From Lepidodermella squamata (Eukaryota > Animalia > Gastrotricha), in the NCBI GenBank assembly GCA_047495785.1, contig JBLDXI010000017.1, positions 1,736,001 through 1,800,000 on the forward strand: a stretch of 64,000 nucleotides of DNA, read 5' to 3'. How positions within the stretch are numbered: the first letter of the stretch is position 1; the number at the start of each line of letters is the position of its first letter. The notes under the pieces are model-generated. The model was not told the DNA's origin. It saw nothing but the letters and a program-made list of their open reading frames with translations, and searched no databases. Shown in pieces: positions 1-60,084 of the stretch. The position numbers were made by a program, and so were the translations under genes.

Positions 1-729
1 GACCGTAAGATCGAAACTCCGCTGAGTAAGGTGGACGTAGACGTCATCTTTCGTCCAAACTGGTGGTTCAAAAGAATTAAGCTGGCCGCGGTAAACACAT
101 ACGATTTGACCATTTATCGGGTTCCGCGTTAGACTAGTCAAATGCTGACCGGGGGTGCAGCTGTCCCCAGGGCCAAATTCTACCTGGTACGTAGATTCAA
201 TCGTGCCAGTCGGGTTGAAAATCTACGAAAAAAACAAGTATTTCGGGGCTATAACGATGAAAAAATCGCTTACATGAATTCGATGTGTGTTCCAAACTGC
301 GAGTTGGTTGCGTTCTGGCATAGCTACGACGTGATTAGGCTTCTTCAGCATAGTTCCCATGCGATCGACGCCTTGAAACGTAGCCACGACCTGCATTTCA
401 TCGTAGTTAATTTTAGCATCGCCCGGCTCACATCGCCGCCTTTTCCGTGTCTTCTCGTCCGCCGTATTGCCATTCGTTGGACTTGCCAGCGTTATCTCAC
501 CGATTGGTAACTTCAGCAGATTGCTAACAGTTAGTTCAAAAGTGACGTTTTCTTTGAAACGGGCGGTAACTAAGGCCTCGAGCGGCGCCGAGTTGGCCAA
601 TTTTCGGAATTCGGTAATCATTCGAGTTTGTTCGATCTGAAGATGAGCTACCATTTTGTGAACGATAGCCGCCGTTTTCAGCTCCAGCCGGCGCTCCATC
701 ATTTGAACAAACGTTTCAGGGTCCATCAT
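1..729 (-). CDS. N20: coiled-coil + NHL-like propeller family member, 3' part runs off the window
   Basis: ATG at 729 (MMDPETF); helical domain with LLKLPIGEI; KTRKRRR linker then YDEMQVVATF; GTAAGC donor near 272; next exon reads IFNPTGTIESTY...RNPINGQIVCV to the edge. Confidence 0.75.
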
Positions 730-1374
730 TTTTGGGGTTGAAAATGCGGGCAATTAATTTAATTTGATTATTTATTCTACAATGAAAGCAGCAGTGATTT
801 GCGTCCGGAAGAAGTCAAGTCTAGCTACGCTATATTAAAATGAGCTATTTAAGCAACACGCAGCGGATATGGCCCATTTACGCACCTTGTATGGGCTAAG
901 AAACTTTGAAGCGGCTTGTTTTATTATTTATAGCTCACAACGCGCATACACTTCGCGCGTAAAACAAGGAAAAGACAACAATTTTCATAAAATATTTAAC
1001 TAAATGGTCGCTCGTAATGAGACACCGATCTTATTGCTAGCCAGGGCGCATTTTAAACAGTATTGATTGTACATATTTTCTCCAACGTTTTGTGTATATT
1101 CACGGACACTTCACGCCCGGTGTTTGTGTGTTTACCTTGCAATATCTGTCGTAGAAACAAGTAGCCATATATCCGGTTGTGTGTTAATTTTATGCAATGG
1201 TAAGATTGTTTCCGCTTCATTCTTGTTTACAGTGGCCGTCTTACTTCAGGCATAGGAATTTCATGCAAGTATACGCCAAAATCATTTGTGTGCTGGATTT
1301 CAATTAATCGAATACATCAATAACAAAAATTGACCCAACAAATTTCAAGATTTATTCATCAATTTAACGCAAAA

Positions 1375-1656
1375 TCAGTCCAGTTTATTGTTATCAGATG
1401 CTGCAGGCTCTTCAGATGATGCCGAAGGGTCCCGTTGAATACGCAGCTGGCCGAATGGTGTTTTCAGCAGCCGATCGAGAAGTGCATTGAAAACTGGATT
1501 TTCCCTGAAATGAATATTCGGGTCATTACTGGACGTAATTAGGCTGCTAGCTTCGGCAATTAGTTTTCCTCGCTTCGCCAACAACTCCTCGATTGCGTGT
1601 GTAATTTTCTCAGAAAGGTCAGCTTCGATTTTGCCAAACTCACTCGAGTCATCCAT
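1375..1656 (-). CDS. Mini-gene encoding only the family's N-terminal helical domain
   Basis: MDDSSEFGKIEADL...RGKLI...NPVFNALLDRLLKTPFGQL matches the family motif ER.RL...N..F...L..LL.TP.G; stops before any propeller; TTTAG acceptor upstream. Confidence 0.65.
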   Translation of the reverse strand: MDDSSEFGKIEADLSEKITHAIEELLAKRGKLIAEASSLITSSNDPNIHFRENPVFNALLDRLLKTPFGQLRIQRDPSASSEEPAASDNNKLD

Positions 1657-1705
1657 TTCAAATTTTATCAAATATTTCGCTAAATTATTCGGGTATAAAC
1701 ATTAT

Positions 1706-1951
1706 TTATTTTTCTTGACGTTTATTTTTCTTGTGTTTTTTCGGCGATTTTTTATTTTCTGACACCGAAATTATTTGCGTTTCCAGGAGTTGAGATAGGA
1801 TTTCATCAAACTCTTTGTTTCTCTCGAATTCCATCACCGACCCGTTTTTCACGCCTTTGTCAATATTTTCAATCAATCTGTCGCGTTCTTTGTCTAGAGC
1901 TGAAGTTAAACGCTCTAACAAATCAGCCAATACCCTGTCAACATTCGACAT
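1706..1951 (-). CDS. Second helical-domain-only mini-gene with basic tail
   Basis: MSNVDRVLADLLERL...ERDRLI...RNKEFDEILSQLLETQI then KKSPKKHKKNKR; TTTTTTAG acceptor about 16 nt upstream of the ATG. Confidence 0.65.
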   Translation of the reverse strand: MSNVDRVLADLLERLTSALDKERDRLIENIDKGVKNGSVMEFERNKEFDEILSQLLETQIISVSENKKSPKKHKKNKRQEK

Positions 1952-6910: not shown

Positions 6911-7050
6911 CGAATGTTCTGTTCAACTTACTTCAATAGCGCCAGCTAACGAATCTGAACTGAGCATGAGACCATTTTCAGGGTCGAATTGAATGCCGCG
7001 AAGACCATGAAATCCACCAATAGCTAATTCAACCATAGCAACGTCGAGCG
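6911..7050 (-). pseudogene. Orphan fragment of N18 exon 2 (3' end plus donor)
   Basis: ELAIGGFHGLRGIQFDPENGLMLSSDSLAGAIE is identical to the end of ORF 14181..14813, without the rest of the exon. Confidence 0.85.
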
Positions 7051-7414
7051 ATGGAGACACTAGCTTGATTCCACCAAAATTTTTAATATCCAACGAGATT
7101 CCTAACCTCAAGTGTGGAAATAAAAGTAGAATTTATTGCGCGAGGAATTTTTAATTGATGCAATAAAAACTCAATTTGTAGGCACTTTTTCACTCGTGAA
7201 CTTTGATGCGAGATGACTACCAACCTCTTTTTGATATCGTTCGACTCCTCGTTAATTCCTCCGAATGTTTAAAAATTCTTTTATTGACAACGAAATTCAT
7301 TCAAGGAAGTATTTTTCCAAATTAATTTATGAAGAGAATAGATTTCGGTAAACTGCAACAGTGAGGTTACAATCACTCGAAAGATTTCGGTCTTCTTTCG
7401 GTAGTTACCACATT

Positions 7415-8732
7415 TCAAGACGAGTCTACATCGACGGGGCTCGCCAAAAATACGACTTGCCGATTTAAGAACTCTGGCAAAGCTATGACGCCGAAGCTAG
7501 TAACACCAGATGCTTCAAATGTGATGAGATCACCGCCTTTAGGAGCCATAGCCACCGCTATTCCATCGGGACGAAAGTTGTCCGGCCCTTGGTAAGCATT
7601 TTCCTTCCGACCATTCGAACTCAACACCTTATCAAAAATAATACGATATAATTAAATAAAATTATAAAACGCAACAAATAATAATAAATCTGAACCGTGA
7701 TTTGATTTTTCAGGGACTTTGTAGCGACCAAGAATTTGCCATCTTCATCTACTGTGCAGCCACTAATGTTACAAAACAATCTGTCGAAGGTTAACAGCTC
7801 ATCCGTGAAAAGTTGGCCATTAGACTGATTAATTGGAATTGTGCCAATTTGACTGCGAATATTACAGCCGAAATACAACCGGCCGTCGGGGTGAACTCCA
7901 TAGACCGTAGCAGAATTAGCCAATTTTGACGGTATCTTTGAAGATCGAACGCTATCCCAGTTCCATAGAGATGTGCCAACAATAGAAGCGTCTTCAATCG
8001 TGAATAATTGGTCGGTTTTAGCGCAACAAGCTATGCCTCGCTGGGCTACTCTGGACGGTAAAGTTCGAATGGTTGAAAATTTGACGGCGCCTTCGCCAGA
8101 TTTCACAGGTTGATCGAGTTGACCGATTTGGCCATTTATAGTGAATAACAAGCGGTTGTTGCACGGGTTAACGGCGACATTGATAGGGGTATCAGCTATA
8201 CGTCTAGGGACATTCAAGATGCCCGAGCAACTACTCCGAGACACTAATTTGCCGTTGTAGGAAAAAAGCTGGAAATCAGATAAATTCGTACCAGTAATAT
8301 TGGAATTCAGAAATTTACACTTATGTTGTAACCATGACTTATTGCAAATTTCCCATCAAATAGCGCCACTGCAGTTGGCTTGAATTTAAAACCGTCACTG
8401 CTCTTGAAAGTAGCCGCAATTTGAAGGTCCGAATAGTCGATTTTACCATCCCCTGGTCTTTTCCGCTTCCTCGTTTTGTCATCGGGTGCAGCCTCAAGGT
8501 TCGCCATTTCTGATGACTTTTTACCCGTCACAACATTTCCAATATCGGCATAGATGAGCCGGGATAGCAGATTGATGAAAATAGGATTGACATTGAATGT
8601 AACCTGAAACTTCGCTTTCGTCAACATGGCGTGAACTTCTTGGAGTCTGCTAATTTCGGATGTTCTCATTTTCATCAGAGACTCAATCACATCGGCAATT
8701 TTATCGTCCAAATCATTCGTAAATGATTCCAT
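7415..8732 (-). CDS. N19: coiled-coil + NHL-like protein (3 exons)
   Basis: ORFs 8307-8732, 7621-8244 and 7415-7627 joined by two phase-0 GT-AG introns; KTRKRKR linker; ISGCTVDEDGKFLVA and FRPDGIAV NHL-like blades. Confidence 0.85.
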
Positions 8733-10659: not shown

Positions 10660-13600
10660 TCAGTAACATTGTTTGAGATTAGCGAAAAACGATAGGCGAT
10701 TACTCGCAGCCTCAATGACAGCAACAACGCGGCTGAAAACACCGAAATTCAGGTCGAATGGGTAGTCGTCGGGTATGTCGGCAATGGCCAGGGCCGACGG
10801 AGCAAAATTTTTCATTCCAAAATCGCACAGTCTTTTCTTCGCATCAAGAGAGAATACCTGGAAAATCAACACAAAATTATAATGATTATTCCAGTATTTC
10901 ACGGCTACGCATGCATTGACTATGAAAAAGGTTGTTTCAATTAGCAAAATCAACATTCCAACTTCGAATAATGACTGAAAAATTAACTGTCGTAAAGATA
11001 GATATAGCATAAAATGGCTCCCCACTTGTAAGACGGCACTATCTGAGGAAATCGGTGATCGAATAGCACATTACTACAAGCAACTAGCAAGCCCCTAAAT
11101 GAAAAAGGACGCTTTTCGTAACGGTCCTACGAAGTTTAATATTTTTTATTTTTTTTTTCGTTTTAAAGAGCGCAGCTTTCGCTTTAGCGCCCTGAGACCA
11201 GCATCAGGTGATGGTAAGGATACATACCTTAGACACAAATCAAATTCGCAGATGGTTAAATATTTTCTGGACTTCAAATCCGACCACCCTCTGAAAGACC
11301 AATACACTGAACTCTCCGTGCAGATCAAAGTGGATGGAAAAATGAGAGATCGTTCATTCAAAATTTAAAGACAAGACCACGTCGATAAACATTTGATTTG
11401 ATGAATGATCAAGGTGGCAAAGTCATAAGGTTAGAAATTTGCATCCAAATTTGTTTTTATCCAGTGAGAAAAATTTGCCTTGGAGGCGCGGCGTTATGCA
11501 CTTTGAGGTGCCCACTGGAATTAAGGAAAATGGTGAGCCTTTTGTCCGTGTTCCCTTGGCGATGGTAACACGAAAGGCGAGCGACCGAGGCAGAAAACGC
11601 ATGAAGACTGGAACACCCGAAATATGTGAAACACAGATAATACCCATTTGTGACATGAAACTGCTGTGTTAGAAGCGTGCGGCCTGATGCTATTACCCCG
11701 AGAGCCTTGAAAGGAAACAGAGACGAGAAACGAGCAACATATATTTATCGCAGATAGTATCAAACGAGACGGAAGGCGTAACAGCTACTGCTGAACAAAA
11801 TGGAAAATTTCCAAATTTTTTATTTTTGTTATTTTTTTTTCGTTTTAAAGAGCGCAGCTTTCGCTTTAGCGCCCTGAGACCAACATCAGGTGATGGTAAG
11901 GATACATACCTTAGACACAAATCAAATTCGCAGATGGTTAAATATTTTCTGGACTTCAAATCCGACCACCCTCTGAAAGACCAATACACTGAACTCTCCG
12001 TGCAGATCAAAGTGGATGGAAAAATGAGAGATCGTTCATTCAAAATTTAAAGACAAGACCACGTCGATAAACATTTGATTTGATGAATGATCAAGGTGGC
12101 AAAGTCATAAGGTTAGAAATTTGCATCCAAATTTGTTTTTATCCAGTGAGAAAAATTTGCCTTGGAGGCGCGGCGTTATGCACTTTGAGGTGCCCACTGG
12201 AATTAAGGAAAATGGTGAGCCTTTTGTCCGTGTTCCCTTGGCGATGGTAACACGAAAGGCGAGCGACCGAGGCAGAAAACGCATGAAGACTGGAACACCC
12301 GAAATATGTGAAACACAGATAATACCCATTTGTGACATGAAACTGCTGTGTTAGAAGCGTGCGGCCTGATGCTATTACCCCGAGAGCCTTGAAAGGAAAC
12401 AGAGACGAGAAACGAGCAACATATATTTATCGCAGATAGTATCAAACGAGACGGAAGGCGTAACAGCTACTGCTGAACAAAATGGAAAATTTCCAAATTT
12501 TTTATTTTTGTTATTTTTTTTTCGTTTTAAAGAGCGCAGCTTTCGCTTTAGCGCCCTGAGACCAACATCAGGTGATGGTAAGGATACATACCTTAGACAC
12601 AAATCAAATTCGCAGATGGTTAAAGTTCAATACGACAAAATTTTCAACCGCCCGCTGAAGGCTGATATCAATCAACGTAGCGCATAGTTCTCGACTTCGT
12701 TAGAAATGAATAAAATGGCAATACAATAACACCAAGATCGGTGAGACAAGTCGTTGCTACATGTATTTAACCTGCAAGCGTGTTTTGATGCATGGGGTAA
12801 AACATTGTCATAACCGGGACTTCTCCTTGCTTGAGCTTAGCACCACCTCAATCCATGTCGACGTAAGAAGAGAAATTAGCTAAAACTGATCATCCGAACG
12901 GTGGAATTTATTTATCAGAAAAGCCTCCAGAAAATGAAATTATTTTCAGACTTAGATTTCCCATCAACTCGAAATGACGATTTCGATTTCGTTGAAGACA
13001 ATAGAATTCGTAAACGTTTAAAAGAAAATTGAGCAGGAGACGTGCAACAAAACTTGCGCAATAATTTTTCGAAGTGATTGAGAAGTAACTTTGGTTATTT
13101 TGGAGAAATCGTGGAGTCTCATTATTTCATTTCATTCATTCCGCTGAGGGATGAGCATTGTTTCTGAGGAAAACACGTTATAATGGTCTTTCATTTCTGA
13201 TCTATGAGGAACCATTCTTCGTCCACAATTACCGATGAAGAGTGCCGAATCAAGTCGACTAATCAATTCAAATTAATTAGTTAAGTTAGAATGTTTCCAA
13301 CCACAAAAAGGTCTAGAAAACTCGACAGACTTCGCAATTTAGATAAAGATACGCTAATATAAAGAGGCTTGAAATGGCGATATGTTAATATTTCCGGGTT
13401 CAAAAAGTGGCAGGGTAATAGAGGACGAAGGTAGAACCCCTCAGGATGCTGGGAAACTTTTTAATAGGAAGGCATCGTCACAGGCTAATATTTTGTGTTT
13501 GTTTTTTCGTTTTGAAGAGCGCAGCTTTCGCTTTACCGCCCTGAGACCGGCATCAAGATAAATTAGCCAAAATCATAACCCAAATGGTGGCATTTATTTA

Positions 13601-16141
13601 CCTCAAAAACTGAAATTAGAGGCTTATGAATTTCCCATCAGCTCGAAATGACTCGAATACTGTCTAAAACTAGAACTTGGACGTTATACTAAACATGAAA
13701 TCGCGAGATGTTAATATTTTTGGGTACATGAAGCGGCAGAGAAAATGGAGGAAAAATTTGAAAAAGGACAGTACTTTCAACGGGTATCGTCTATTTTTTC
13801 TTTATTTTCGTTTTAAAGAGCGCAGCTTTCGCTTTAGCGCCCTGAGACCAACATCAGGTGATGGTAAGGATACATACCTTAGACACAAATCAAATTCGCA
13901 GATGGTTAAATGTCACCTCGACCAAATTTTCAACCACCCGCTGAAAGCTTATATCAGTCAACATATCATATAGCTCCGAAATTCGTTGGAAATAAAAGAA
14001 ATTTGCAATAAAATGGCGCAATGGTGGGTATAACGCATTCTAATAATCAGACTGCCACTCGAATAGGAGTCAAACTCCCCCTCGATTCTTACCAATGCAA
14101 GAAAATAAGCGAGTTACTCTTAACATCCGAATGGCATTCATCGAGATGTATATTTCCAAAATGGAGCCCGAATGTTCTGTTCAACTTACTTCAATAGCGC
14201 CAGCTAAAGAATCTGAACTGAGCATTAGACCATTTTCAGGGTCGAATTGAATGCCGCGAAGACCATGAAATCCGCCAATAGCTAATTCAGCCTTGGCGAC
14301 ATCGAGCGAGCCATTCGAAGATATCGGAACGGCGTACAAACTCGATGAATCATCGCTGTTCTCACGAAAGAACAATCTACCGCCATGGGCTCCAATCACC
14401 ATCGGCTCGTTCACTTTCGTAATGACCCACTTATCCTGCGGGGTCCAGTCAGCCAGTGAGTAGGATCGAATGCAGTTGCCAAACGCCGTGAAACAGCGAT
14501 TGACGTTTGCGCATATGGCAAGGCCATGGGCGAACAAACCAGTCGGGTCATCGATAACAGTTCTCACCCTGAAATTTTGAAAGTCCGAGTTTTGTTCGCC
14601 GAGATTGATTGAAATGACGATTCCGCGGGAAACAGCGACCATTTCATTGTTGACTGGGTTCAAAGCGATCAAGCGTGGGCAGGTTTGGTGGCGAGTTGTG
14701 CGCACTTTCGGCCCTTTTTCCGGGACATCGATGATTTTCACCAATTGACCAGTTACGGTATAAATCTGTGATGAAACATAAAATATAAATAGATAAATGA
14801 CCGCCTTAATCATATCAAGGCCAGAGGATTTGTATAAGAAATTTATAAGTTCAATAGTCGTCTATTTGAATCAGACAAGCAGAGTGGCGCAGTGGAAGCG
14901 CGCTGGGCCCATAACCCAGAGGTCTGTAGATCGAAACTACGCTCTGCTAAACGTCGCATTTTTTCATCGCGCTTACGAAAAATTGATATTTATCGCATGA
15001 ACCTGATTTTGATAATTTATCGATTTTTGAAAATCCAGTTCAGTTCCGATTTCGAAATGCTCATTTGAAGCTATGAATGTGATTCTTCAGCTGGGCATCA
15101 ATTTATTCACAGAAAATTGAAAAATTAATACCACCTTAAATATTATGGGAAAAACTTCCTACACAACTTCAAAGGTCCAGTGATGTATTTTCCAGTTTCT
15201 GGACACACTGATATCAAAATTTATCCGAGAACAAAATCGACTACGAGAGACTAAAATCAATAGCGTTTCCGATTTTCAATTTTTTATGTTGAAACTGGGG
15301 TTGATAAACTCGTTTGAGTTATAAGAAAAGATGCAATTTTTTCTCGATTTTACGGGTGAGGCGCGAACGCCGGTACCCAAGTGAAATATTGTGCACCCGA
15401 CTCCGCCGATGAGGCAAAGCGCAGGGGTCAGCGCGCCGCAGTGCAATGGCACGCCTCGCCCTGGGGCGACCGACTTGTTGATCTCGGTACATCCCAGTGC
15501 CAGGTAAGTTTAGTGGCAATAGCTTTTAGCTCATTGCCGCTTTCATCACTGAAACGCTTCTGAATATTCGACTCAATTTGCATAAAATCATGGAGAGAAA
15601 ATGGAACATAGAGTTTAAAAAATGCGACGTTTAGCAGAGCGTAGTTTCGATCTACAGACCTCTGGGTTATGGGCCCAGCGCGCTTCCACTGCGCCACTCT
15701 GCTTGTCTGAGACCATATCACGATAAAGATTTTATGTCCTATTTCTCCAGGTCGAAAATTGTTCAAAAATTTAGGAAAAATCATCTTACTACGTTAATAT
15801 CAAGGTTCGAATCGTGGAAGTTAAGCGTGAAAAATTACCGCGATATAACCGATGAAATGAACAACAAAGCCGTCCTTAGTTGGCAGAGCCGCGACACTGC
15901 ACGGTTTCGACTCTTTCTGGAAGTCTTCCAACGTCAACGAAGCAAGCAGCTTCATTCTTCTGTAAGGATTCTCCAGCCAGATGCGGTACCAATCAGGCCC
16001 CAGTTCAACCTGAGGCGAGCTGGTTTTCTCAGATGGAACGGCTGAATCAAAATTATCCAACAAAGCGCCGAAAGTCTTGACGTTTTTCTCAACTTTTCCA
16101 GGCTTTGCCAGCTCGGTACTTATTTCGATGGTTTGATCCAT
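10660..16141 (-). CDS. N18: NHL-like protein with divergent N-terminus; both introns contain ncRNA genes
   Basis: Exon 1 15839-16141, exon 2 14190-14765 (FHGLRGIQFDPENGLMLSSD), exon 3 10660-10857 (VFSLDAK...FAPSALAI...RLSFFA); phase-0 GT-AG introns at the family positions. Confidence 0.7.
11168..11257 (-). ncRNA. Candidate SL RNA, copy C
   Basis: As copy A with one substitution (GCTGG vs GTTGG). Confidence 0.7.
11850..11939 (-). ncRNA. Candidate SL RNA, copy D
   Basis: Identical to copy A. Confidence 0.7.
12532..12621 (-). ncRNA. Candidate SL RNA, copy E
   Basis: Identical to copy A. Confidence 0.7.
13517..13555 (-). pseudogene. 5'-truncated copy of the candidate SL RNA (3' hairpin only)
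   Basis: gagcgcagctttcgctttaccgccctgagaccggcatca, then similarity ends; leader and donor missing. Confidence 0.7.
13818..13907 (-). ncRNA. Candidate SL RNA, copy F
   Basis: Identical to copy A. Confidence 0.7.
14878..14949 (+). tRNA. tRNA-iMet: Initiator tRNA-Met (CAT), solo inverted copy
   Basis: Identical 72-nt sequence followed by a T6 run; no U1 downstream on this strand. Confidence 0.98.
15353..15511 (-). ncRNA. U1: U1 snRNA, copy 2
   Basis: As copy 1 with one substitution just before the Sm-site position. Confidence 0.95.
15632..15703 (-). tRNA. tRNA-iMet: Initiator tRNA-Met (CAT), cassette 2
   Basis: Identical 72-nt sequence. Confidence 0.98.
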
Positions 16142-22500: not shown

Positions 22501-22618
22501 TCCCTAGGGCGACGAGACGGTCACGCTCGGCTTGCAGAAATTCAGTCATTTGAAGTGCAATCCGCGCGAAATCTTCGTCCAATAAATCTCCAATTTTACT
22601 CATTTTAACAGAATTCAT
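19509..22618 (-). CDS. N16: coiled-coil + NHL-like protein; intron 1 (20317-22132) holds an RT relic and a tRNA-U1 cassette
   Basis: Exon 1 22133-22618, exon 2 ~19760-20316 (VVDKFGHLIAADSGSNNVK), exon 3 IFSADGRTRL...GVHLFGGR*; closest to N17. Confidence 0.8.
20464..21000 (+). mobile_element. Degenerate non-LTR retrotransposon reverse-transcriptase fragment
   Basis: Frameshifted LPDNQYAFRSHLSATD (QxGFR..ST motif) and LIADLDVEVAYDSI (LD..KAFDSV motif). Confidence 0.7.
21621..21779 (-). ncRNA. U1: U1 snRNA, copy 4
   Basis: Identical to copy 1. Confidence 0.95.
21898..21969 (-). tRNA. tRNA-iMet: Initiator tRNA-Met (CAT), cassette 4
   Basis: Identical 72-nt sequence. Confidence 0.98.
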
Positions 22619-25121: not shown

Positions 25122-25212
25122 GATTTTGTAAAACCTTCCGAATAGAATAAACATTTAATTTAATTCACAGGATAAAATCACAAAAGAAATCAATATAGAA
25201 TATAGAGATAAA

Positions 25213-43200: not shown

Positions 43201-46200
43201 TGAGCAGGTCACATTCGGTGATCTCCATGGTCGAAAGCTAAATTTTGGAGCCGGTGCTGGTGGTGCGCCTTACAAGCGTTGTTTCTGGTTCAACGCCCTA
43301 GCAGCTCAGCTAACCGCAATGAACAGAGGGTGGATAAAACCCAGCCAAGTTGCTGTTCCCGAATGCTACTCCCCAGACGTGAAGCCGTCCAGATGCTTTG
43401 AGTGGCTACAGAAATATTGTGTCTCTTCTACCGTTTCCAACTCTTCATTATTGTTGATTATTGACGATCGTATGTTGATTATACTATGTACTATTAACAT
43501 AGTAATGATTATACTATGTTATCATTATTCCTTCACATTCGCCCTAAATAAATTCCTGACTACGAATTCAGTCATCAAGAATTCGTCAATCAGCTCGGCT
43601 CTCAACAACGTTGACGGCTTGACGCGTCCGCTCTCTTTGCCTTTTGCCATAGCAGAACGCGGATAAAACTGGTTATCGCTGATCCCAAGGTCTTCCACAA
43701 CGAGAGCTCGCCGAAAAAAGCACCTCGGTCAAAATGGACACCGAAAACTTCATGCAACCACACTTTCCTATCAGTTTCATTCGATTTTGTAGCTCTGAAA
43801 AAATTAACTTTGGCTATCTAGAAATTTTAAGGTGGCTAACTTTTCGCATGCTTTCAGCAAGCGTAAAATGCGAGGCAGCGACGTTTCCGAGCTGTTGATC
43901 GGATGCTTTAATATTCCGATGTAGTGATCCACGACGTTCAGAATTTGAATGGTAACCCTAATAGTTACATAATAGTTATAAGACATTCCCTTGAAGTCCC
44001 TTAGGCCAGTTTTTTCCCGTTTTTCCAAATATGGACATGTCAAGAAGAAAGCAGTTTCGCCTTTCCTCGTCGACATCAGCGCTAGGTCGAGCCCGATGAA
44101 AACAGCTACATTTGCTGCTGATCAGATGTTGTTGCATTTGCGGCTGGGTATAATTCTACTGTAGCATGGCCGGTGGCACTCGCGGCGAGATTTGAGCTTG
44201 ACTATGTGCCTGAAGTTGGGTTTGGACCATTAGCGCTTCAAAATCGAGTCAATCGAGTCAATCTAGGTCAATTTTCAGTACAACAGCCGCAACAAAAACT
44301 GCAGCCGCAAGATCAGTCGCCTATGCAAGCCGCGCCATTGGCGCCAGAGGAAGAGTCTGACGACTGATTATACTTAGATATCGACATGTTTGAGATGTGA
44401 TATGATAATTGAATGGTGATGATTTTGCAAGCGGGCAATCGACATCAAACCACCTTGACCTCGAAACACGCACGACAAAATATCTCGGCGGCCGCAAATT
44501 CAACGTAGTGCGTAGTCTTTGAAGCGGCAATGTGTGGCTCTGCTCCTCGACAAATACTTGCGTCGCGCGCCCAAAATTGCCTGGCCGAAACTCGGCTGCT
44601 AACTACACTTCAACATCTCCGAACAATTCAACACCCGAGATTTTTCGGTTTCAGTACAAAAAAATAAGTTCAGTAAAAAGAACAGGTCAATATTAAGGTC
44701 AATCTAGTAACGCGCAACATGAAGGTGTGTGGTGGAAACACGTTAAAATGGGCTAAAATGAGGCGGAGGCGATTTGGGAAGATTTAGGCTCGGCGGTGGG
44801 AAGAAAAACACTTTTTGCAGCCCTGTGCAAAACTACAGTTCCCATAGTATCCCAGAGAAGGTTCAGCAACGTCACATAATGACTTTGTTGGTAGCCAGTA
44901 TTATTAAGAGCAAAATCTCACCACGAATAGGAATTTAAAAAATGAAACGATGTTATTGAAATTTCAAAACCTCAATAAACGATCGACGACCACGACAAAG
45001 AATTCTGTTGACAACTATGAGTTGGATGTTGGCACTTTGATGGCTGTGAATGAAAGAAGTCATGAGCGCTTCGGCCAAGGCGTACTCTCCGCCGCTTATT
45101 TCTATTTCTATTGTCAAGTATTATCAAAGAATGGTTCAGAAGTTAAATTCAAAAGTGACTTTTCAGATGAAGAATTGTTCTAGAAAGATGGAGGCTCGAT
45201 TCTACACAGATTACCCCCTTTCATCGCGACGCTGTCATCGCCGAGGTGAAGGGCGAGCTGATCTCAGCCTAGGAGTCGGAACTCGAGGAGGAAATCTTAC
45301 ATAAACTTAGGGTCTCGATAATACCCAGCCTGCGTGAAGATCTCTACGAAGAGTTGAAAAGCCGGATGCGTGACTGTCTGCAGCAGCTGATTGATGGCCA
45401 AGAAACGCGCCGCTATAGGCATTAGCTGTTGAAATTATTGTAGAGTAGATTGTAGATGAAAACAAAAATCTTCTCTGATTCGCCTTAATTTGTTCTCCTT
45501 TTATTTGTTCTTCCTTTTATCAACGTCACTCCCGGGCACGCTCTACGCCCTCTTGCGCGAGCTGCTATCAACATTTTGGCCACGCCGGCGTTGAGCGATT
45601 TTTCCCCAGCTAAAACTCGTTCTCAATCCCAACAAGAACAGAACAAAAGCTGCACGGTCCGACTCTATCTGCGTATGAATTGGCTAGCTTCATTGATGCA
45701 TTCTATATTAGAGCTGTGATGCAAATTAATAGAGTGGAGAGGCTCTTTGGCACTAAAAAAGTTTCGAACCATGGCTATGCCGTTTATTTCTTATAGAACA
45801 TTAAACAAGTTGGCGGTAAACCGGGTTGAACCGAGTAAACCGCAAATGTTCGTCATCCAAGAATGTTAACCCTGGCACCTCTACCCGACAACCGCCGCTA
45901 CAAGCGAGAGAGAACCAAGGCCAAGGCCGTAGCCCGCCTAGGGATGTCAGACACGTAGACACTCAATCTTGTTTAGCACCGTGGACCTCACATTTTCAAA
46001 TTGGCAAAAATCGAGTAAAAATAAGAAAATTCTCAGGAAAACAAGACGGCTGCTGCTTGTTGGGTGTTTCCTTAAGGACGTTGCAGCGCTGGGCGATTGT
46101 TTTTATGAGGCCCTGTGCGATCAAATATCTATTCGGCTTTATTTCACCCATTCTCGTTCAGCAAATCCGAACTGCCACCGCAGATCGAATGAGATTCGAC

Positions 46201-48007
46201 TACGCCGAGCTAGAAGGATTCACCTGAAGCGGGAGACGTTGTCGCCAATGAAGACGTAGAAATGCCATTTGCCCATCAAAGTAAACATTTCCCTGAATCC
46301 TAACTTTTTTCATTCATACAATTTGCCACTTTAATATTTGCAGTAGCCGAGCAGACCAAAGGCGGGACATGGGCTGATCAGAAGTGTATCCTGGCTGCTT
46401 CCCGAGCCCAGCGAATCGAAATTGTCGTCCACTGTTTTAACTACTCTATTCGATACGAAAATATTTCGCCAGAAGACCCGGACCATGTAGCACATGTTGT
46501 CTATATTAAAAATCACTATTTTTCGGTGCGCGACATTTTCGCTAATGGGAAATCGGTTCCCAAGATCAAAATCTTTGTCAACGACGCGGCCTGATTTCAC
46601 ATTTGATAGATATTATAAAATAAACGTTCAAAATTATTAGCTAATAAAATATTGTGAATGTTCATTGAATAAATTAATATCATCTGCATGTTTTTTTCAG
46701 GTCACGTGATGCTAATAAAGTCACCCCATTTTGGTACGTCAAAGTCACCCCAGTTGACGGTATTATTTAAATCACATTTTCTTCGAATTTCAGAATTTTT
46801 CAAGCAAAAGCTGATCTTCAACCTTTCACTCAATTTATTGAGAGGCAACAATTTGGAGTTGCGGAATTTTCAATAATTTAAACGAAAATAAAATTTACCT
46901 CGATGCGACCTTTTGATTGGTGAGCAACAACCAGCTGATCTGACTCGTCAGTTGCCAACGCGCTGATAATTCCGAACCCATCAGCCAACAAATCAGGCTC
47001 AGTTCCACGCACCAAACCCCCTATCGAATCGAGTTCAAGCGAGTAAATCGATTTCCCACAGCGAATGATCAGCTGTTCACTCGTGGCTGCTAGAACGCTG
47101 ATATTCCCACCGAACTCATCAGCGTCGATTTTCAACTGACCATCCATGCGCCATGGGCGTGGTGGGGCGTTGAAACCCGTGATTATACCGCCGACACTCG
47201 TATAAATAACGCTGGCTTTAGGAGTTATCGCTAGCCCACATGGCTGTGAATCGAAACGTGTCCGAATAACCACGTCAATACGACTTAACCTGGTCGGAAA
47301 TGGAAAATTAACCGGGTTGAACGTTTCAATCTGCCCACGATCAATGCCAAATAAACGACCGTCGCGAGGGCTAGCGCACAAAAACCGAGGCGCTCCAGGT
47401 GATGAATTAGGCACTAATTTCCTCGCCAATTGATGAGTTGCTTCAATATTTCCATTAGGAAGCAACATCTAAAAAGGAAATCGGTAAACATGAACAAACA
47501 TGAAGAAATTAAAAAACGCACGCTAATTCGGTTTTTATGTAGAGCCGCAAAGCAATTATGGCAAGGAACAGCGGTTATAGCCGAAATTTTCCGAACAGGA
47601 TGCCCCAATTTATCAAGTGAATCTGCCTTAATTGTTGCCACAACTTCAGCACTGTCGTAATCACAAGCCGTCCGTTTCCGGCGCCGATTTTCTCCAAGTT
47701 TCAGTCGATCATCCGAAATAGGCCTCGCAGTTTTCGACTCAGCATCATTCGCAGGCAAATTAGTTTTGTCCACGAAACAACTTTCAACAACTTCGGCGGG
47801 TTGGACGTCGCTGGAGAACTCGATTTCTCCCATTTTCGTATGTAGAAAAACGTCCAAAACATGTTTAAATTCGTTACTGAGAACGAACTCGTAATCTTCG
47901 TCGGTGTTTGAACTCAGGCGGTCTTTTTCAGCTTGAATTTTCGACAAAACTCGGCGAACAACTTCAGAAACTGCATCGTCGATTGCATCCTCTATCGGAT
48001 GACTCAT
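40218..48007 (-). CDS. N5: coiled-coil + NHL-like protein with a 6.5-kb intron 2 (40428-46898)
   Basis: Exons 1-2 in ORFs 47414-48010 and 46878-47468 end GRIE|GTAAAT; the only family-type exon 3 before the next gene is 40218-40427 (VLSPDG...FEPSGIAIL...FIFGIP). Confidence 0.7.
42656..43666 (+). CDS. HNH-fold endonuclease-like ORF resembling Crinkler/CR-type effector domains
   Basis: C.L....AARAAHIVKRS, GFIVANPIENAYDRAELCF and PYKRCFWFNA resemble the AAHI / NG.LL...IE.AFD..LCF / PF.RCL..HA pattern; short coiled-coil segment upstream (42324-42400); true start and end uncertain. Confidence 0.55.
   Translation: MSATAAFAKSYLEEVVFTPSSSSISNRVKDKVNADKKAKSDRFKAYILHRDCPLEVLKRNNSYCSLLDFELPFEAARAAHIVKRSILQKEGWRERLGIDDFEDEYSPGVGFIVANPIENAYDRAELCFLMDVNPSELICQILRSDIASELLVNRNNWRDLLSKKFLNKEVTLDNQSYSRKKLEQVTFGDLHGRKLNFGAGAGGAPYKRCFWFNALAAQLTAMNRGWIKPSQVAVPECYSPDVKPSRCFEWLQKYCVSSTVSNSSLLLIIDDRMLIILCTINIVMIILCYHYSFTFALNKFLTTNSVIKNSSISSALNNVDGLTRPLSLPFAIAERG
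45969..46420 (+). pseudogene. Degenerate OTU-like cysteine protease, probably transposon-borne
   Basis: LKDVAALGDCFYEALCDQI (GDGNC.F.A...Q catalytic motif), IRTATADRM, and YL...AGHGLIRSV across frameshifts and a stop. Confidence 0.55.
46717..46762. mobile_element. Probable DNA-transposon terminus
   Basis: AAAGTCACCCCA occurs twice and ends ...CCCCAGTTGACGGTA (reverse complement TACCGTCAACTGGGGTGACTTT, TIR-like); no partner end found. Confidence 0.4.
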
Positions 48008-48458: not shown

Positions 48459-49738
48459 CTAGCCCAGAGATAGAAATAAAACACGCCTGCCAACAATTTC
48501 GGTTACTGCGATGATTAATTGGTTCTTCTCCGATGAATTTAGGACAGCAACACGATTCGGCGCGTAAACTTCCTCATTTTCAAACTCAAGGGGCTTGAAA
48601 CTCAATTTATCATCAGCTAGGTTGGCGATCTATTTCAAAAATGACAAAAATTCCCAAAAATCTCAGAAAAAACATCAATTTACGTGTAATCGAGAATCAG
48701 CGGCTAAAATGGCGTGATTGGCGTGATTGTCGAATGTCATCGAAGCAATGAAAACGTATTGGTTATCGAACCGCATAAGCCGGTTCATCAGTGGCTCGCC
48801 ATTGCCGTCAAGCTGAACTTGATACAAAAACCGCGAGCCTCTACCCACAAAATACAGTAAATCTCCTCGAAGCCCAACAACCCTTGACTGCGGGGCTGAA
48901 ATGTCATCCAAGGGCCAGTGTCCTGACACCCAGTTCCAGGTCTTCAAACACACGCGGGTTATCGACTCGTGGACGATGGAATAACACAGCGACTGGCCTT
49001 CATTCACAGCCAAACCACAGCCTTTGAATAATGGCATTCGCATACTGGTGGCCAACTTTTTCCTCGAACACGAACTAGACGGCAATATTTTGCTAACATT
49101 AACCGAAAATAGACCCTGCTCGCAATTAAATACAATTTCCAGCGTTTTCGACAGATAAACAGCATTTCGAACTATCAAACGGAGGCCGTCAACCAAACAG
49201 AAATGAGGCATTACTCTAGCTGAGGCGGAGATAACCTAGTAAGGTGTGAAATAAATTAGGAAAAAATTAGTAAAAATCTGAAAATTACATTCAATCCATT
49301 TCCGTTGAACAGGATGAAACAATGCTCCTCAGGGATCGAAAGAATCACTGACGGACGGGGTAACAATAGATCGTTGATTTCAGCAATTTTCCGCAGGGTA
49401 CTGAAGTTACATTCGGAGGCAGGTGGGCAAATATCAGCAACTGGCTCTTTAGGAATTTCAACTATTTCTTGCTTCGAATTTTCGATTTCTTTCACTTGAC
49501 GATCGAAATAAGCAATGTTGCCTAGACGATATTTCACCAAACAGTCGAGGAGAAGTTGAAATTTCGCCGAGACTTTGACTTTAAGCTTATTCTTCTTCTT
49601 CTTCTTTGATGAACGAGGGTGTAATTCGGACACTCGCCCACGCTCAGCCGCCAGTCGGCTCATAAACTGCTGAACAACGTTCGTAATTCTGTCGTCGATT
49701 GTGGCAATCAACACTTGCTTATCAAAATCGCCACTCAT
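48459..49738 (-). CDS. N4: coiled-coil + NHL-like protein
   Basis: ORFs 49256-49738 (poly-Lys) and 48675-49211; exon 3 IANLADD...YAPNRVAVL...RVLFLSLG*. Confidence 0.8.
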
Positions 49739-50489: not shown

Positions 50490-51909
50490 TTATACTTCGT
50501 CGGGTTTTTCTTGCAAAGCAGCAAAAAACAACACCCGGTTTGTGCTGTGTTCGCAAGTAGCAAAAATGGCGGAGCAATAGCGTTTTACACCGCCCTCATC
50601 AAAGTGGTAAGGTTTCCCTGTGGGCGCCGTTAACATTGCTATGTCAGTCGGCGAAAACGCTGGCTTGAGCCGCGGACAGCAAGAAGCAATGCAAGAATCG
50701 TAATTCCACGACACAACCTAAAACACGGCGCAATGTGAGGCGAAAAAACCGTTCGAAAACGAGCAATGATTACCTTCACTGTGCAACAGCCTTTAAGCGC
50801 CAAAATGATGTTGTCGTTCGTGTCAAAAGTCAGCGACCGGACGATGGAATGCAATTCGCCCAACTGCGTCGACTTCTCAACATCCAAATCGCCATGCCGA
50901 TCGACTGCGATCCGCCGAAGCAACCGCCCACCGCAGCTATTGACGAACAAGTGACGATTTCGGTAGCCTAAAACGTTGGCCTTGTTGTATCTGTAATCAG
51001 TCAGCGACACTGCTTTTCTCACAGTCCAATCTTTAAGCGAGTAGGATTTCAGGGTGCTTGAAGATTGGGTATAACACAACGCATGTTCTTCGTGTAGGGC
51101 TAATCCGAGGCCGGAAAACATTTTCACGCGTATTTTCGCACTCAACGTTTCCGGCTTGATGTCGCCGAAAATTGGCTCCAGATCGATTGTTTTAATACAT
51201 TTCCGATCAATGTAGATCAGCTGATTTTTAGGCTGATAGTAAACGGCAAATCGAATGCCTTGTAACCGCGTTTCAACGTCGTCGGCTAAAATCAAATAAG
51301 TTGCACTAATTTTAGCACTGGAAGTTACGACCTATCAATAACAAAAACCAGGTCAATTATCTATGCAATGCGATTGTTTTAACTTACGCTGAGCTTGTTT
51401 TCGTGAAGCATAACGAAGCAATCCTTGTTAGGAATCGCAACAATGGGTGAAGGTCCGGTTACTTTCATACCCAAAGCGTCGTATTCTGGTAAAGTAGCGA
51501 CAACTTGAAGATTCGAGTAACTTATTCTAGGAGGCTCCGATTCCCGGACCTTCTTCGATGTTTCGGCGGGAGAAGACGCTTCAACAGTCAAATTTCGCTT
51601 CTTCACCGGCTTTTCTGATGGCTTTGCAACCTCGACCGGAGGAGGAGTAGGTTCGCTTTTTACAATAGGACCAGTTACTTCCGCAAGAGGTGGAACGATA
51701 TGACCAACTTTCTCGTTAACAAGTCGGTTAATCAGGTGTTTGAAGTCGGGGTTGATTAGCACGGGTGTGTTGCCGGGTTTGTCAGATAAAATTCTGCGTT
51801 TCTCTGTCATAATGACAGATAAAAATCGCTGGGTGACATCAGCGATGTGATTGTCGATTTGCTCAATGAGCGCCGCTTTTCGATCACCAGCATCTGCTTC
51901 CGGTGACAT
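50490..51909 (-). CDS. N3: coiled-coil + NHL-like protein
   Basis: ORFs 51379-51909, 50639-51295 (LTFDTNDNIILA) and 50490-50714. Confidence 0.85.
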
Positions 51910-52614: not shown

Positions 52615-53894
52615 TTAGCAATCGACGGGGGATGCAAAGAAAACGATGCGATTTGAGTCTGAATCAGGGACGATGATGACACGTGAGTAACTAGCATGGC
52701 CGAATCGAAAGCCGCCAGTCGGAGAAGTCAGCATGGCGACTCCGGACGGAACGAATCGCCCATACAACTCGTGCGGCGGCTGAAAAACAGCAATGCGCTC
52801 GCCATCTGGAGTCAGTACTTCTAATCTGGCTCGGCTTTTATCAGCGACAATCAAATTGCCATCAGAGTCGACAGTTCCACCACGAACCTCGCGAAAATCA
52901 GCAGCAAGCGTCTTCATACCGCTAGGTATCAAATTCCCCTTGTTATCTAAAGGAATCGCGTTGATTGAACGGCCACCCTGTCCTGAGCAGTACAGACGAG
53001 TAGACGGCGTTTCAGCGACGCAAAGCGCAGAAGAATTGAATCGGTCTTTCTCGTCCTTGATATGAATGCGGTTTCTGATAATCCAATCGTCCATTGAATA
53101 GCTGATGATACTATCGCTTGAGCAAGTGAAAAGTTGACGGGTAGGAGCTGAAATTGCGAGGCCGAAAGTTGAATCGCGACGTGGGCTGACACAGGTTTTA
53201 GCATCGTAGCGGCAGGCAAGTGATGGTGAGGCTGAAAATTTGATGCGGCAAATTGCGTTGCGATCGCCGCAAAACACCTGGCCGGTAAGTGGGTCGGCGG
53301 CTAGGCAGTGGTGGCGCAAAATTACGCCAGTGTTGCTGTGCTGAGAGTACAGGTCAAAGGTCGCCAAAATTGTCGTCGAAGCCGAAAGCAACTGAAAAAT
53401 GAGAAATAAGTTACACTTCGACTGCATTTTTCCGAGTGCATTTTCAAGCTTACGCTGACGCGATTTTGATTGTGCGAAAAAGCGACGCAATTAGTTCGAG
53501 CCAGGGTGCAGATCGAAGTCGGTTGGCGGATTGTCATGCCCAGCAAATCACTACCGGCAACAACTGCGACAACCTGCATGTTCTCGTAATGCCGTTTCAT
53601 CCTCGCACTGCGATCAGAGAGGTGAAGCGACGTGGCCGAGCCGCCGAATCCGCTTGTTCGGCTGTTCGAGGCAGTTGACGGTGGCGTAGGCAAATCGACA
53701 ACTGAACCGAACGGCGTTGATAGCACTGTTTTCATCGCCGCTTCGAAGTCTTTGTTCTTCTGAAACAAGCCGATGGACGTTTTCGGAACAGATTTGTAAC
53801 TACGAACGAGACGCTCACGCTCGCTTTGAAGGCGACCTAAAAAGGCTTGAACCGCGTTGGTCACCTCGCCGTCAATTTTTTCTTCCAAGCTCAT
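52615..53894 (-). CDS. N2: coiled-coil + NHL protein (2 exons)
   Basis: Intron 53392-53453; clear NHL repeat VRGGTVDSDGNLIVADKSRARLEVLTPDG...FVPSGVA. Confidence 0.9.
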
Positions 53895-56971: not shown

Positions 56972-57380
56972 ATGCAAGCAAGCTTGATCGCAACAGTTTT
57001 GGCCTCGTTGGCAGTTGTAATATCGATCATCGAAGCGGCGCCAGCCAGCCGCCGTTCTGCTTCAAGCAACAGTGCCGAACTAACCTTCACGAACTGTAAC
57101 GACTGGGTGGCAAGGTTTAAACACGAAGCAAATAAGGCCCTTCCCAGTAAGTCCTATACATTAAATTCTCGTTTCTTAACTAAAATTTATCTCGATTTTT
57201 CTAGAAAAAGCGTCAGTAGGCGAAAGGCGCCGTCAGAGCAAAATCGATGATTACTGGTTTTACTGCATGTTGAACAACTTCGACTCAATCGTGCCCCAAT
57301 ACGACGGCAATGCTGATATGAATTCTATCGATATGATCGACTTACCTGATGGGAAGAATCCGTTTGACATTTTCAATTGA
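56972..57380 (+). CDS. Secreted protein, 116 aa (2 exons: 56972-57146, 57205-57380)
   Basis: Signal MQASLIATVLASLAVVISIIEA; phase-1 GTAAGT..CTAG intron; CNDW...RRR...DYWFYC. Confidence 0.75.
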
Positions 57381-58472
57381 TCACTGTTTGCGTGAATAAT
57401 CACCGTCTCGTTATATTTTGTTCCGAATCCTCTTTTTCTCCCCCATTTTTCTCCTGTTTTGCCATCGTGAGAATTTAGCGATCGAATAAATTTTTTTATA
57501 ACGTTTTGTAATTTTATATGCAACATTTATTTTTGTATAAAAATTATGATTCGATTTTTATTGTTTCTGGCGTCTCAAGGCTGGGACCTAATGTCTAAAA
57601 GAGTATACGTTTTTTTGACAAGAAATCTCGCTCGATCAGTCTCTTCTTGCTTTGTAAATAATATTCCAATAAAGTTACGAATCCGAACAGTTTTAAACAT
57701 GACGTTTTTCCAAGTTTACTACTTGGGACAGGTCCCAAGGCTGGAACCATCAGCTTAAGGTTATCCCTATAACGCTTGGGAATTATTTTCTAATTTTCGT
57801 TCTAAAAGATGGTGAGCTTTTTGAGCTTTAACCTTGAATTATTTCATTTTTCGAAATTAGAACAACAATAGGTACTTCGAATCGGCAATTTTATCCCGCG
57901 AGCAAGAACATTTTGTGGTCGAAATGTCCGATAAAAATCGTAAGTAAGACAGCGAGTAGGAAAAGGTGACAACAAATAACATCAGCTGAGGCAGAAACCG
58001 TGTCGTCCGATTCGATTGACAGATGTCACCGCCCCGAGGTCCGACTCGGTGTCTCAAACAAGGATGTTAATTAATTTTACACAGGATAACGAGTGCTAAT
58101 TAGTCTAATTAAATGTTGCTCTTTCTTTTTGGGCAATTTCGAGGCCTGTCACTCATTTCTGCCACGGCTAGATTTATCCCTGATTTCATGCAAATTTTGC
58201 CGAATTTTCAATGAGCAATTTTTGGCCATGTCTTAATTCCACTAATTAAATCTATAAGGGAGAAAGATTTTCCTGTTTGTACGGGCTTGTACGGGTAAAT
58301 TTTGTGTAGGTATACGCCATAGTTCGTATCTAGGCGAAAATAAACCCTTCAGTGCATCAAGGTGACAAAGTAATTTTCAACACGTCTTATAAAATTAGGA
58401 AAAAGTGTTTCCTAAAAATAGCCATCACGTGAAATACATTTTATTTCCCAGTATAATTGAAAACAAATTGAT

Positions 58473-60084
58473 TTATTTAAATTTTGGCGCGAAGAGTAAA
58501 ACCGAGTTTCGGCCGACATCAGCGACAACAACGACAGGTCGGCGGTGTTTTGTCATATCGAGTTGCATCGAAGAGATGACAGCAACGCCTCGCGGTTCAA
58601 AGGCGCCGCAGCTTGAAAATTGCTCGCTCAGAGACGGCGCGAAAGTACATATCGCCCGACCGCTCGAAGAAAACACCTGAATTCGCCGATTTCCCTGCTC
58701 GACGACAAGCAGATTGCCCTCAAGATCGCACGCAGCCGCGGTTACCTGCGAGATATTACCCGGAGCTGGGCCGTCCTCGGCCAGTAAATACTTCTCATGC
58801 GTCTCGATTCGCCCACTGCGGCCGAAAATAGGCGATCGGTATAGTTCAGCCCCATTCCACGTCGTGTAGACTAAAAAGGTCTTAGCATCAGAGCCGTGAA
58901 CTGTCCAATCAACAGCTGGATGCTGGACGGAGTGAAGCGTTGTAGCGAATTGGTGGCTTGGGGGAAGTTTACAACGCAGCCGTTCTGAGGCATCATCAAG
59001 TGAAATAGCCCGAATTTCCATTCCAGTAGCGGCGTAGATTAGCCGGCAAGGTGTGAGCGAAATCGCGATGCCACTAATTTTTCCGCCGGAAATTTTCATG
59101 TCCCCAAATTGCGCGAACTTTGTTGGAACAACAAGGGTTTGATCGGCTTTGATTGTTGTAGTGTTGAAAGCAAAAATTGTATCCTGTTTTCCTGAAAAGT
59201 ATTCAAAACAAAAGTTTTAAAATTAAAATTAAAATTTAATTTAATTTAATTTAATTTAAAATTTCAATTTGAAATTTTTGAAATTTAATTGATTTAAATT
59301 AATTTTTAAATTTTATTAAATTTAATTGTTTACCTTCTTCCATGAGAAATAACCGGCCAATATCGTCAGCAGCCAGTTGAATAATTTTTCGGAAAAATAA
59401 AGGTAGATGTTCGTCGTGGCACAACATATAAGTCGCAATCAGTTGACCAGCTGAAGAAACGATACTGACCCGGTTATTGTTATGGGAAAAAGCCGCGCAA
59501 CTGTTGGCACCAGCCGGAATGAGGCAGGCAACACAAGTCGGGTTCTCAATAACGCAACCTAGCGCGTCCTGGCCATGAATAACAGCTAATACTCGCATCG
59601 ATTCGTAAATGCTATACGGCAGCTCTGATCGGCGATGTTCGACCGAAATCGGCCGTTCCACCACGGTTCTAACTTTTGAGGCGAGAAATAGCGGCTCGCC
59701 CTCGATATCTGTGCTGCAGGAGCTTGAAAACACCTCGAGTTTTCTCATCGCATTCATAAACTTCGGGCTCAGAGAAAAGGCCAGAGGTCGTCGCATTGGA
59801 GCTTGCCCTGATTTTAAACGCCGCTTTTCCTCGCCTATTACGACTCGGGCTTCGTTGATTACACGGTCACGCTCGGCTTGTAACCTAGATAAAACGACTA
59901 GCCGGGCGTCTTCCACAGCTGACTCGACCGATCGCTCGATTTCCATGAATTCATCACTGAGTCGGTTAAGCTCTTCAACGACTCGCTCATCTTCCTCCTC
60001 GTTTTTTGGGACAATGTTTTTGTTGTAACGAACAGTTGACTGACGAGGAGCATAGGCCGAAGTATGCCGTGCTAGTTGGCTCAT
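58473..60084 (-). CDS. N1: coiled-coil + NHL protein, most canonical-looking member (2 exons)
   Basis: Intron 59192-59333 (phase 1, in frame); NPTCVA, ACDLEGNLLVVEQGNRRIQVFSSSG and FEPRGVAV NHL consensus; long coiled coil. Confidence 0.9.

Follow-up and report, generated by a model that had tools for sequence, protein, structure and literature searches.

What kind of protein is encoded by a tandem array of twenty strongly divergent propeller genes that carry neither a RING nor a B-box, and where did such an array come from? The question is raised by a stretch of 64,000 nucleotides (nt) from the gastrotrich Lepidodermella squamata (assembly GCA_047495785.1, contig JBLDXI010000017.1, positions 1,736,001 to 1,800,000 of the forward strand), here called the window; coordinates below are counted from its first base unless stated otherwise. 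In the genome paper of this species, NHL and TRIM genes go unmentioned (PMC11660948). On balance, we favor the view that the array arose when RING-less and B-box-less genes, descended from a local RING-coiled-coil-NHL family of the TRIM-NHL/Malin type, expanded specifically in one lineage, and that its products act as non-catalytic target binders. The structural and evolutionary part of this view is demonstrated by the comparisons described below; the functional part we infer.

Twenty minus-strand genes (G1–G20) span about 61 kb, from before base 1 to 60084, where the ATG of G1 marks the end of the array at the very base at which an earlier note on this DNA had placed it. The genes were found by collecting six-frame open segments, building hidden Markov models (HMMs) from those segments and then modeling the splicing. 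Open segments and HMMs reveal three recurring exon types in a fixed order, on the minus strand throughout. Nineteen models (G1–G19) are complete and lie between 7415 and 60084, G20 crosses the window start, and there is no further family copy within 10 kb before the array. Open frames of about 190 codons at the 41% guanine plus cytosine content of the window, recurring 20 times with their exons in one order, lie far outside what chance would produce. Each protein starts with a two-helix head of 60–80 residues and continues through a variable linker into a propeller of about 300 residues. Short introns with acceptors of the TTTCAG type separate the exons. The two phase-0 introns that the earlier note described as conserved are found at conserved positions in 17 genes (G3–G19), whereas G2 keeps intron 1 only and the sole intron of G1 is of phase 1 and sits elsewhere. 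Similarly, the claim that essentially all frames are intact holds in that the frames are open in 19/19 complete models, but G15 and G18 are headless and three fragments are present. The paralogs are indeed very dissimilar, with a median pairwise identity of 22% (range 15–69%); only G7/G8 (69%) and G16/G17 (39%) form closer pairs. The models are as follows.

G1, 58473..60084, minus strand: 489 amino acids (aa), longer helical head, phase-1 intron at 59192-59333; array end at its ATG at 60084
G2, 52615..53894, minus strand: 405 aa, intron 1 only; the most conserved member
G3, 50490..51909, minus strand: 435 aa, three exons
G4, 48459..49738, minus strand: 390 aa, three exons; lysine run between both head helices, Y..M.V degenerate
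G5, 40218..48007, minus strand: 421 aa if exon 3 is 40218-40427 (an inferred assignment); otherwise exon 3 is missing
G6, 38668..40071, minus strand: 432 aa, three exons
G7, 36456..38584, minus strand: 400 aa, intron 1 of 863 nt, 69% identity to G8
G8, 32457..36226, minus strand: 407 aa, intron 1 of 2.5 kb
G9, 31097..32359, minus strand: 384 aa, three exons
G10, 29570..31053, minus strand: 460 aa, long proline/lysine-rich linker; intron 1 in frame by chance
G11, 28132..29450, minus strand: 404 aa
G12, 26640..28065, minus strand: 440 aa, serine-rich linker, intron 2 of GC-AG type
G13, 25213..26508, minus strand: 396 aa
G14, 23790..25154, minus strand: 419 aa
G15, 22730..23762, minus strand: 311 aa, short exon 1 without helical head
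G16, 19509..22618, minus strand: 414 aa, 1.8-kb intron 1 containing a tRNA-iMet/U1 cassette
G17, 16366..18431, minus strand: 417 aa, 39% identity to G16
G18, 10660..16141, minus strand: 358 aa, degenerate head (helices 1 and 2 missing), repeat-filled introns of 1.1 and 3.3 kb; model uncertain
G19, 7415..8732, minus strand: 399 aa
G20, 1..729, minus strand: exon 1 at 226-729 and start of exon 2 at 1-222; continues 628 nt beyond the window start (L026)

G18 may be decaying. The G5 model is uncertain as well: with exon 3 at 40218–40427, its intron 2 would be 6.5 kb long (40428–46898). This putative intron contains a plus-strand open reading frame (ORF) of 336 aa (42656–43666) with no Pfam match, and a transfer RNA (tRNA) gene, tRNA-Val (45812–45898).

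First, we focus on the propeller. The alignments contain an FD..GN...AD blade and an F.P..[IV]A blade, and the motifs that had been read by eye, including the shared helical head and Y..M.V (about 17 of the 20 genes), are real. A family profile made from an alignment of 21 exon-2 pieces matches the solved NHL domains of Thin/TRIM32 (1.1e-12), TRIM71 (1.1e-10), TRIM3 (2.3e-10) and TRIM2 (2.2e-9), with much of the score derived from one blade motif matching every blade. Other propellers score from about 1e-3 to 1e-2 (DFPase and Drp35) or 6.5e-5 (the YWTD receptor LRP4). Structure prediction covers the fused exons 2+3 of G2 and a near-intronless relative of 411 residues on the same contig (L005); joined spliced proteins were used for the alignment, the identities, the tree and the ratio of nonsynonymous to synonymous substitution rates (dN/dS). 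The AlphaFold2 model of G2 has a predicted local distance difference test score (pLDDT) of 83.6 and a predicted template modeling score (pTM) of 0.81, and its best Foldseek matches are the NHL domains of Thin, TRIM71, TRIM2, TRIM3 and Lin41. For the L005 model (pLDDT 63.5 overall, 80–94 in the later blades), the top matches are TRIM71, Thin, Lin41, Brat and Mei-P26. The template modeling (TM) scores of the TRIM-NHL top matches are 0.6–0.67 by target, and LRP6 and LDLR lie below the TRIM-NHL entries in the ranking. Exons 2+3 account for five blades, and a further one has its first two strands encoded by the end of exon 1; the Y..M.V strand before blade 1 is likely to be the closing strand of blade 6. 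By profile and by predicted fold, the propeller is of the six-bladed NHL type, the assignment that had been proposed over SMP-30/gluconolactonase and YWTD.

Both of these other propeller classes were tried and rejected. For SMP-30/gluconolactonase (PF08450), the SGL matches reach 12–16.9 bits against a cut-off of 26.3, and DFPase stands at about 1e-3 against 1e-12 for TRIM-NHL. For YWTD/LDL-receptor class B, LRP4 compares with Thin as 6.5e-5 with 1e-12, and LRP6 and LDLR rank lower in Foldseek.

The array propellers differ widely in surface character. Their net charge spans -12 to +16 and their isoelectric point (pI) 5.1 to 9.5, about half of them are acidic (G8 and G12, for instance, in contrast to the basic G10 and G16), and even the sisters G16 and G17 differ by 21 charges. 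Such a spread speaks against a single nucleic-acid ligand common to all members and in favor of differing targets.

The claim of the earlier note that RING and B-box are absent has held up. A regular expression for both motifs finds none in the six frames of the 64-kb window, and as a positive control the same expression finds RINGs in the flanks, where Pfam zf-C3HC4 scores 29–38 bits. Pfam detects no RING in the exon-1 ORFs and no zf-B_box in any exon scanned. Moreover, eleven genes, among them G6, G7 and G9–G16, start 27–146 nt after the preceding stop, so that there is no room for an upstream coding exon with RING or B-box before them. The tightest case is G15, with its ATG 27 nt past the G14 stop and immediately after an AG. 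We thus show that the array genes, as predicted, lack RING and B-box. On a separate note, the ATGs of G3, G4, G6, G9, G10, G12, G13, G15, G17, G18 and G19 are preceded, at a distance of 0–30 nt, by a TTTTAG/TTTCAG-type acceptor for which no donor can be seen. The intergenic spacers measure only 27–230 nt, an operon-like packing that would fit spliced-leader trans-splicing.

Relatives that do carry a RING are found next to the array. A genome-wide profile search, which covered the assembly of 121 Mb and 151 contigs, returned 35 exon-2 matches, made up of the 20 array genes and others. Three or four RING-less copies are located on contig 13. Two further arrays occupy the same contig as the window on either side of its array, at 1578–1606 kb and 1805–1820 kb, and most of their members combine the same propeller with a RING exon and with a helical exon that is longer; a Pfam B-box is found in none of them. 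In one RING-bearing relative (L023:2389–3540; C17:1590389–1591540), a Cys/His cluster before the coiled coil looks like a degenerate B-box on which Pfam is silent. The array and its RING-bearing neighbors have both the propeller and the head motif ...PLGS in common.

A tree of the propeller region (34 rows, quick tree search, with the short rows G20, LA2 and LA4 omitted) places G3–G19 and the contig 13 copies in one clade with a Shimodaira-Hasegawa-like approximate likelihood ratio test (SH-aLRT) value of 97. G2 joins the L005 gene and two metagenome homologs. G1 is without a RING, with none found upstream to 64000, yet it groups with RING-bearing relatives. Neighboring genes are often sisters in the tree (G3/G4, G5/G6, G7/G8, G9/G10, G11/G12 and G16/G17), which is the pattern of tandem duplication.

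Outside this genome, whole-domain relatives are rare. Word-index protein searches with G2 exon 2 and with the family profile gave nothing. An exhaustive profile search returned thousands of bacterial multi-NHL proteins that match via a single blade motif, and only two whole-domain relatives among its top 150. Both lie on metagenome contigs (L018 and L019; ENA ERZ27332993 and ERZ23486764) that also carry animal genes, namely actin, homeobox and rhodopsin-type receptor genes. The two homologs are RING-less, with a helical-head exon followed by the propeller and intron 1 at the same place, and match G2 best (30–33% identity); a metagenome homolog is marked 'NHL (faint)', and the one on L018 begins 230 nt past a neighboring gene. 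Since two metagenome contigs from other animals carry the same design, the RING-less form predates this species. In this picture, G2 would be the conserved member, and G3–G20 would have expanded later. By profile, neighborhood and tree, we show the predicted array to be a RING-less offshoot of the local RING-coiled-coil-NHL family. TRIM-like genes are described to have arisen by duplication and subsequent partial loss of the RING-B-box-coiled-coil (RBCC) module (Marin, 2012; PMC3503706).

What remains in front of the propeller is a short helical head. Alignment of the array members yields the motif ID..[IV]..VV..[FL]L..LQ.ER.RL ... NP.F..LL..L..TPLG.I, and in every head-bearing gene (all except G15 and G18, which lack the head) the head starts with ATG at one alignment position. 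The head comprises two helices of about 35 and 15 residues, with wide, heptad-like hydrophobic stripes on both, and its E-R-x-R-L motif is almost invariant; the stripes and this motif would fit helix-helix packing. In the AlphaFold2 model of L005, the helices span residues 16–54 (39 residues) and 72–83 (12 residues), with a disordered linker of about 65 residues between the second helix and the propeller. A complex prediction for two copies of the 67-residue head of G2 gave a score of 0.01, with the alignment unused and the fold uncertain, and thus weighs neither for nor against pairing. Where a single exon of a RING-bearing member holds the whole region, about 50–70 additional residues separate helix 1 from the ...NP.F...PLGS helix. 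Because the array genes have the same end helices at closer spacing, the head can be read as a coiled-coil remnant, and it is plausible that a deletion removed the middle of the parental coiled-coil region and left its two ends as the head. The term 'coiled coil' in the earlier description is therefore only partly apt: a helical head is present, but as a two-helix remnant of 60–80 residues of the longer coiled coil of the relatives.

The basic patch that was said to end the linker is clear in only part of the array. At least five lysine or arginine residues within seven, 8–16 residues before Y..M, are found in 9/20 genes (G5–G9, G12, G17, G19 and G20); in G2, G11 and G13 the patch is weaker, and the remaining genes have none or carry it elsewhere. 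In L005, the corresponding segment is predicted to be disordered. Genes with a strong patch (G5–G9, G12 and G17) mostly have acidic propellers (pI 5.1–6.2), G19 being an exception, and patch-less genes (among G2–G4, G10 and G14–G16) mostly have basic ones (pI 8.5–9.5), a pattern that is confounded by phylogeny.

Are these genes maintained? For G7/G8, dN is 0.19 and dS 0.84, giving a dN/dS of 0.23; all other tested pairs are saturated at synonymous sites, where codon tests are uninformative. Intact frames and splice sites despite saturated dS argue for function. Both observations bear out the 'selected repertoire' of the earlier note, and we show that the predicted genes are kept by purifying selection. 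Strands show a lower column entropy than loops, and greater variation in length is confined to the D-to-A loops. Furthermore, path lengths in the tree, counted from the node at which the three groups meet, are about 0.9–1.5 for G2 and the metagenome genes and about 1.6–2.6 for the expanded clade. This fits an approximately twofold faster evolution of the expanded clade than of the G2 lineage, an estimate that depends on the rooting and on the quick tree; the epithet 'rapidly diverged' agrees with these branches of about twice the G2-lineage length. Within the closest pair, exon 2 (36748–37232 in G7 and 32748–33229 in G8) shows 85% DNA identity and a dS of 0.47, as against 0.7 to >2 elsewhere in the pair, which hints at gene conversion limited to exon 2.

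According to the reading that we favor, each gene would encode a soluble intracellular protein with a two-helix amphipathic head, a disordered linker that often ends in a basic cluster, and a six-bladed NHL propeller. The head would retain the first and the last segment of the parental coiled coil, the middle having been lost. After the loss of the RING, the proteins would bind their targets without ligase activity, and changes in charge and loops might have adapted their propellers to different ligands, either protein or RNA. They could hold or regulate these targets alone, as the RING-less Brat does. Alternatively, the retained helices could pair the proteins with each other or with RING-bearing relatives.

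Several points weigh against this reading. The models G1–G20 are predictions from the DNA sequence, and any ligand, partner or cellular location is hypothetical. Single pieces of the propeller reach only 12–19 bits with Pfam NHL (PF01436), for which the gathering score is 20; in several paralogs and relatives, these sub-threshold matches always fall on the FD..GN...AD blade, the penultimate one. The head of L005 has a pLDDT of only 50–65, the head finds no meaningful match in PDB, Pfam or Atlas, and an hhalign comparison of head helix 1 with the RING-bearing relatives gives weak scores (E 2e-4, probability 44%). Loop entropy is the same on the top and the bottom face of the propeller (2.52 vs 2.54 bits, p = 0.87), and this equal variability gives no positive sign of selection for diversity.

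Other explanations have been considered. All members might be sequence-specific RNA-binding post-transcriptional regulators like Brat and LIN-41, with messenger RNA (mRNA) bound by the top face and a basic patch that strengthens RNA binding or directs nuclear import. In favor of this, the solved folds nearest to the propeller are RNA-binding NHL domains (TRIM71, Lin41 and Brat, each with RNA, and Mei-P26), a basic cluster sits beside the propeller in 9–12 of the 20 genes, and Brat sets a precedent for a RING-less NHL protein acting in this way. The propeller charges speak against such a uniform role, however, since roughly every second propeller is acidic, as are most of those next to a patch, and we regard it as rather unlikely. 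A role as enzymes of the SMP-30/gluconolactonase/DFPase type is extremely improbable: there are weak Pfam SGL matches (16.6–16.9 bits) and Atlas neighbors that bear both NHL and SGL labels, but the former stay below the cut-off, the DFPase match is about nine orders of magnitude weaker than that to TRIM-NHL, and the kinship with RING-NHL genes indicates a binding propeller.

The position of the array between two RING-bearing arrays on one contig has suggested that the RING-less paralogs are variable defense sensors that hand non-self ligands to the flanking RING-bearing relatives via their helices. The many, extremely diverged copies would suit this idea, as would the match of the retained helices to parts of the relatives' coiled coil, and TRIM families are reported to expand in immune contexts in other animals (PMC2533329). 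Against it, neither dN/dS nor loop entropy gives a sign of positive or face-specific diversification, and we consider it unlikely. The same low likelihood is assigned to a split recognition-effector system formed by the RING-less array and the flanking RING arrays, in which some 20 diversified NHL 'sensor' subunits would pair via the end segments of the coiled coil with few RING 'effector' paralogs. If true, this would amount to a combinatorial intracellular ubiquitin-ligase repertoire for defense or proteome surveillance, of a kind undescribed for TRIM proteins. It is very improbable that the models are truncated and that a distant or spliced RING/B-box exon makes the products ordinary TRIM-NHL ligases. 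The AG acceptors shortly before many ATGs do make some 5' splicing likely, but an unpaired acceptor before the ATG suits leader trans-splicing better than an upstream coding exon. In addition, no frame of the 64 kb contains a RING/B-box motif, 11 genes follow so closely upon the previous stop, the heads all begin with ATG at the same alignment position, and the L018 homolog likewise starts 230 nt after another gene. We give just as little credence to a graveyard of functionless duplicates. The headless G15 and G18, two head-only ORFs, an orphan exon piece and the long repeat-filled introns of G5, G16 and G18 would be expected of a mostly dead array, but 19/19 complete models have kept their frames and splice sites though nearly all pairs are dS-saturated, the sole measurable pair (G7/G8) has a dN/dS of 0.23, and structural core positions are conserved.

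The fragments and the other features of the window are listed below.

1378-1701 and 1709-1963, minus strand: two adjacent head-only ORFs with no propeller exons behind
6926..7132, minus strand: orphan copy of the end of G18 exon 2
9057-9406, 15352-15703, 18839-19188 and 21620-21969, minus strand: four near-identical cassettes of tRNA-iMet followed by U1 small nuclear RNA (snRNA)
14878-14949, plus strand: lone inverted tRNA-iMet
11135-12624: tandem duplication of about 683 bp with 99.4% identity, inside the 3.3-kb intron 2 of G18
5864-6284, 12506-12727 and 13739-14161: related pieces of 210-430 bp
2004-3080 and 4470-5366, minus strand: paralogous ORFs that both begin like a signal peptide, continue with a proline-rich middle and a transmembrane stretch, and end in a conserved C-terminal tail; no Pfam match
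60657-62212, minus strand: rhodopsin-family receptor (Pfam 7tm_1, 32 bits), directly upstream of G1

A third head-only ORF is found on contig 13 (L015:228–587). The three ORFs encode about 80–120 aa with start and stop and without propeller exons; they may represent copies in decay or, alternatively, small head-only proteins that could compete for the partners of the heads. The U1 snRNAs of the cassettes score 100–106 bits with Rfam, and the cassettes lie in intron 1 of G16, in intron 1 of G18, in the G17/G16 spacer and upstream of G19. As with the receptor gene next to G1, a 7tm_1 gene adjoins the family member on metagenome contig L019.

How does the array compare with known systems? As a rule, a genome holds only a few TRIM-NHL proteins, with all their domains in place; as conserved regulators they control mRNA fate and protein turnover. 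Like the members of this group (TRIM class VII or Marin subfamily C: TRIM2, TRIM3, TRIM32/Thin, TRIM71/LIN-41, NHL-1/2/3, NCL-1 and Mei-P26), the array proteins are predicted to have a C-terminal six-bladed NHL propeller preceded by a helical region; their best profile and fold matches are found there, and RING-bearing relatives adjoin the array. They differ in that they have no RING, B-box or filamin domain, in that their coiled coil is cut to two helices and their NHL repeats stay below the Pfam threshold, and in that they occur in twenty tandem copies of about 22% identity.

Brat of Drosophila, a RING-less NHL protein acting as an RNA-binding post-transcriptional regulator, offers the best precedent for a non-catalytic role. 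This translational repressor shares with the array the descent from TRIM without a RING. Brat, however, is a conserved, single-copy protein with two B-boxes, a full coiled coil and a basic RNA-binding face, whereas the array proteins have no B-boxes and half of their propellers are acidic. Lineage-specific TRIM expansions, such as the vertebrate B30.2-type clusters, resemble the array in tandem birth and death, high divergence and domain loss. Those clusters keep the RING and vary SPRY/B30.2 under positive selection, whereas in the array the RING is absent, the variable domain is NHL and positive selection was not detected. NHLRC1/Malin, with a RING and six NHL repeats but no B-box, likewise stems from a TRIM duplication followed by partial RBCC loss (PMC3503706). 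The flanking RING-coiled-coil-NHL genes, in which Pfam recognizes no B-box, resemble the Malin state. Malin itself keeps the RING and has no helical head, and the array genes represent the opposite loss.

As predicted, the array is a TRIM-NHL-derived, tandemly expanded set of genes that has lost RING, B-box and most of the coiled coil, and hence a new variation on a known family. It adds a spiralian case of family expansion and modular domain loss, in a phylum almost without functional annotation. If expressed, the array would provide a natural series on what an NHL propeller does alone, and it would show how far the propeller surface can diverge (-12 to +16 charge at about 22% identity) with the fold kept.

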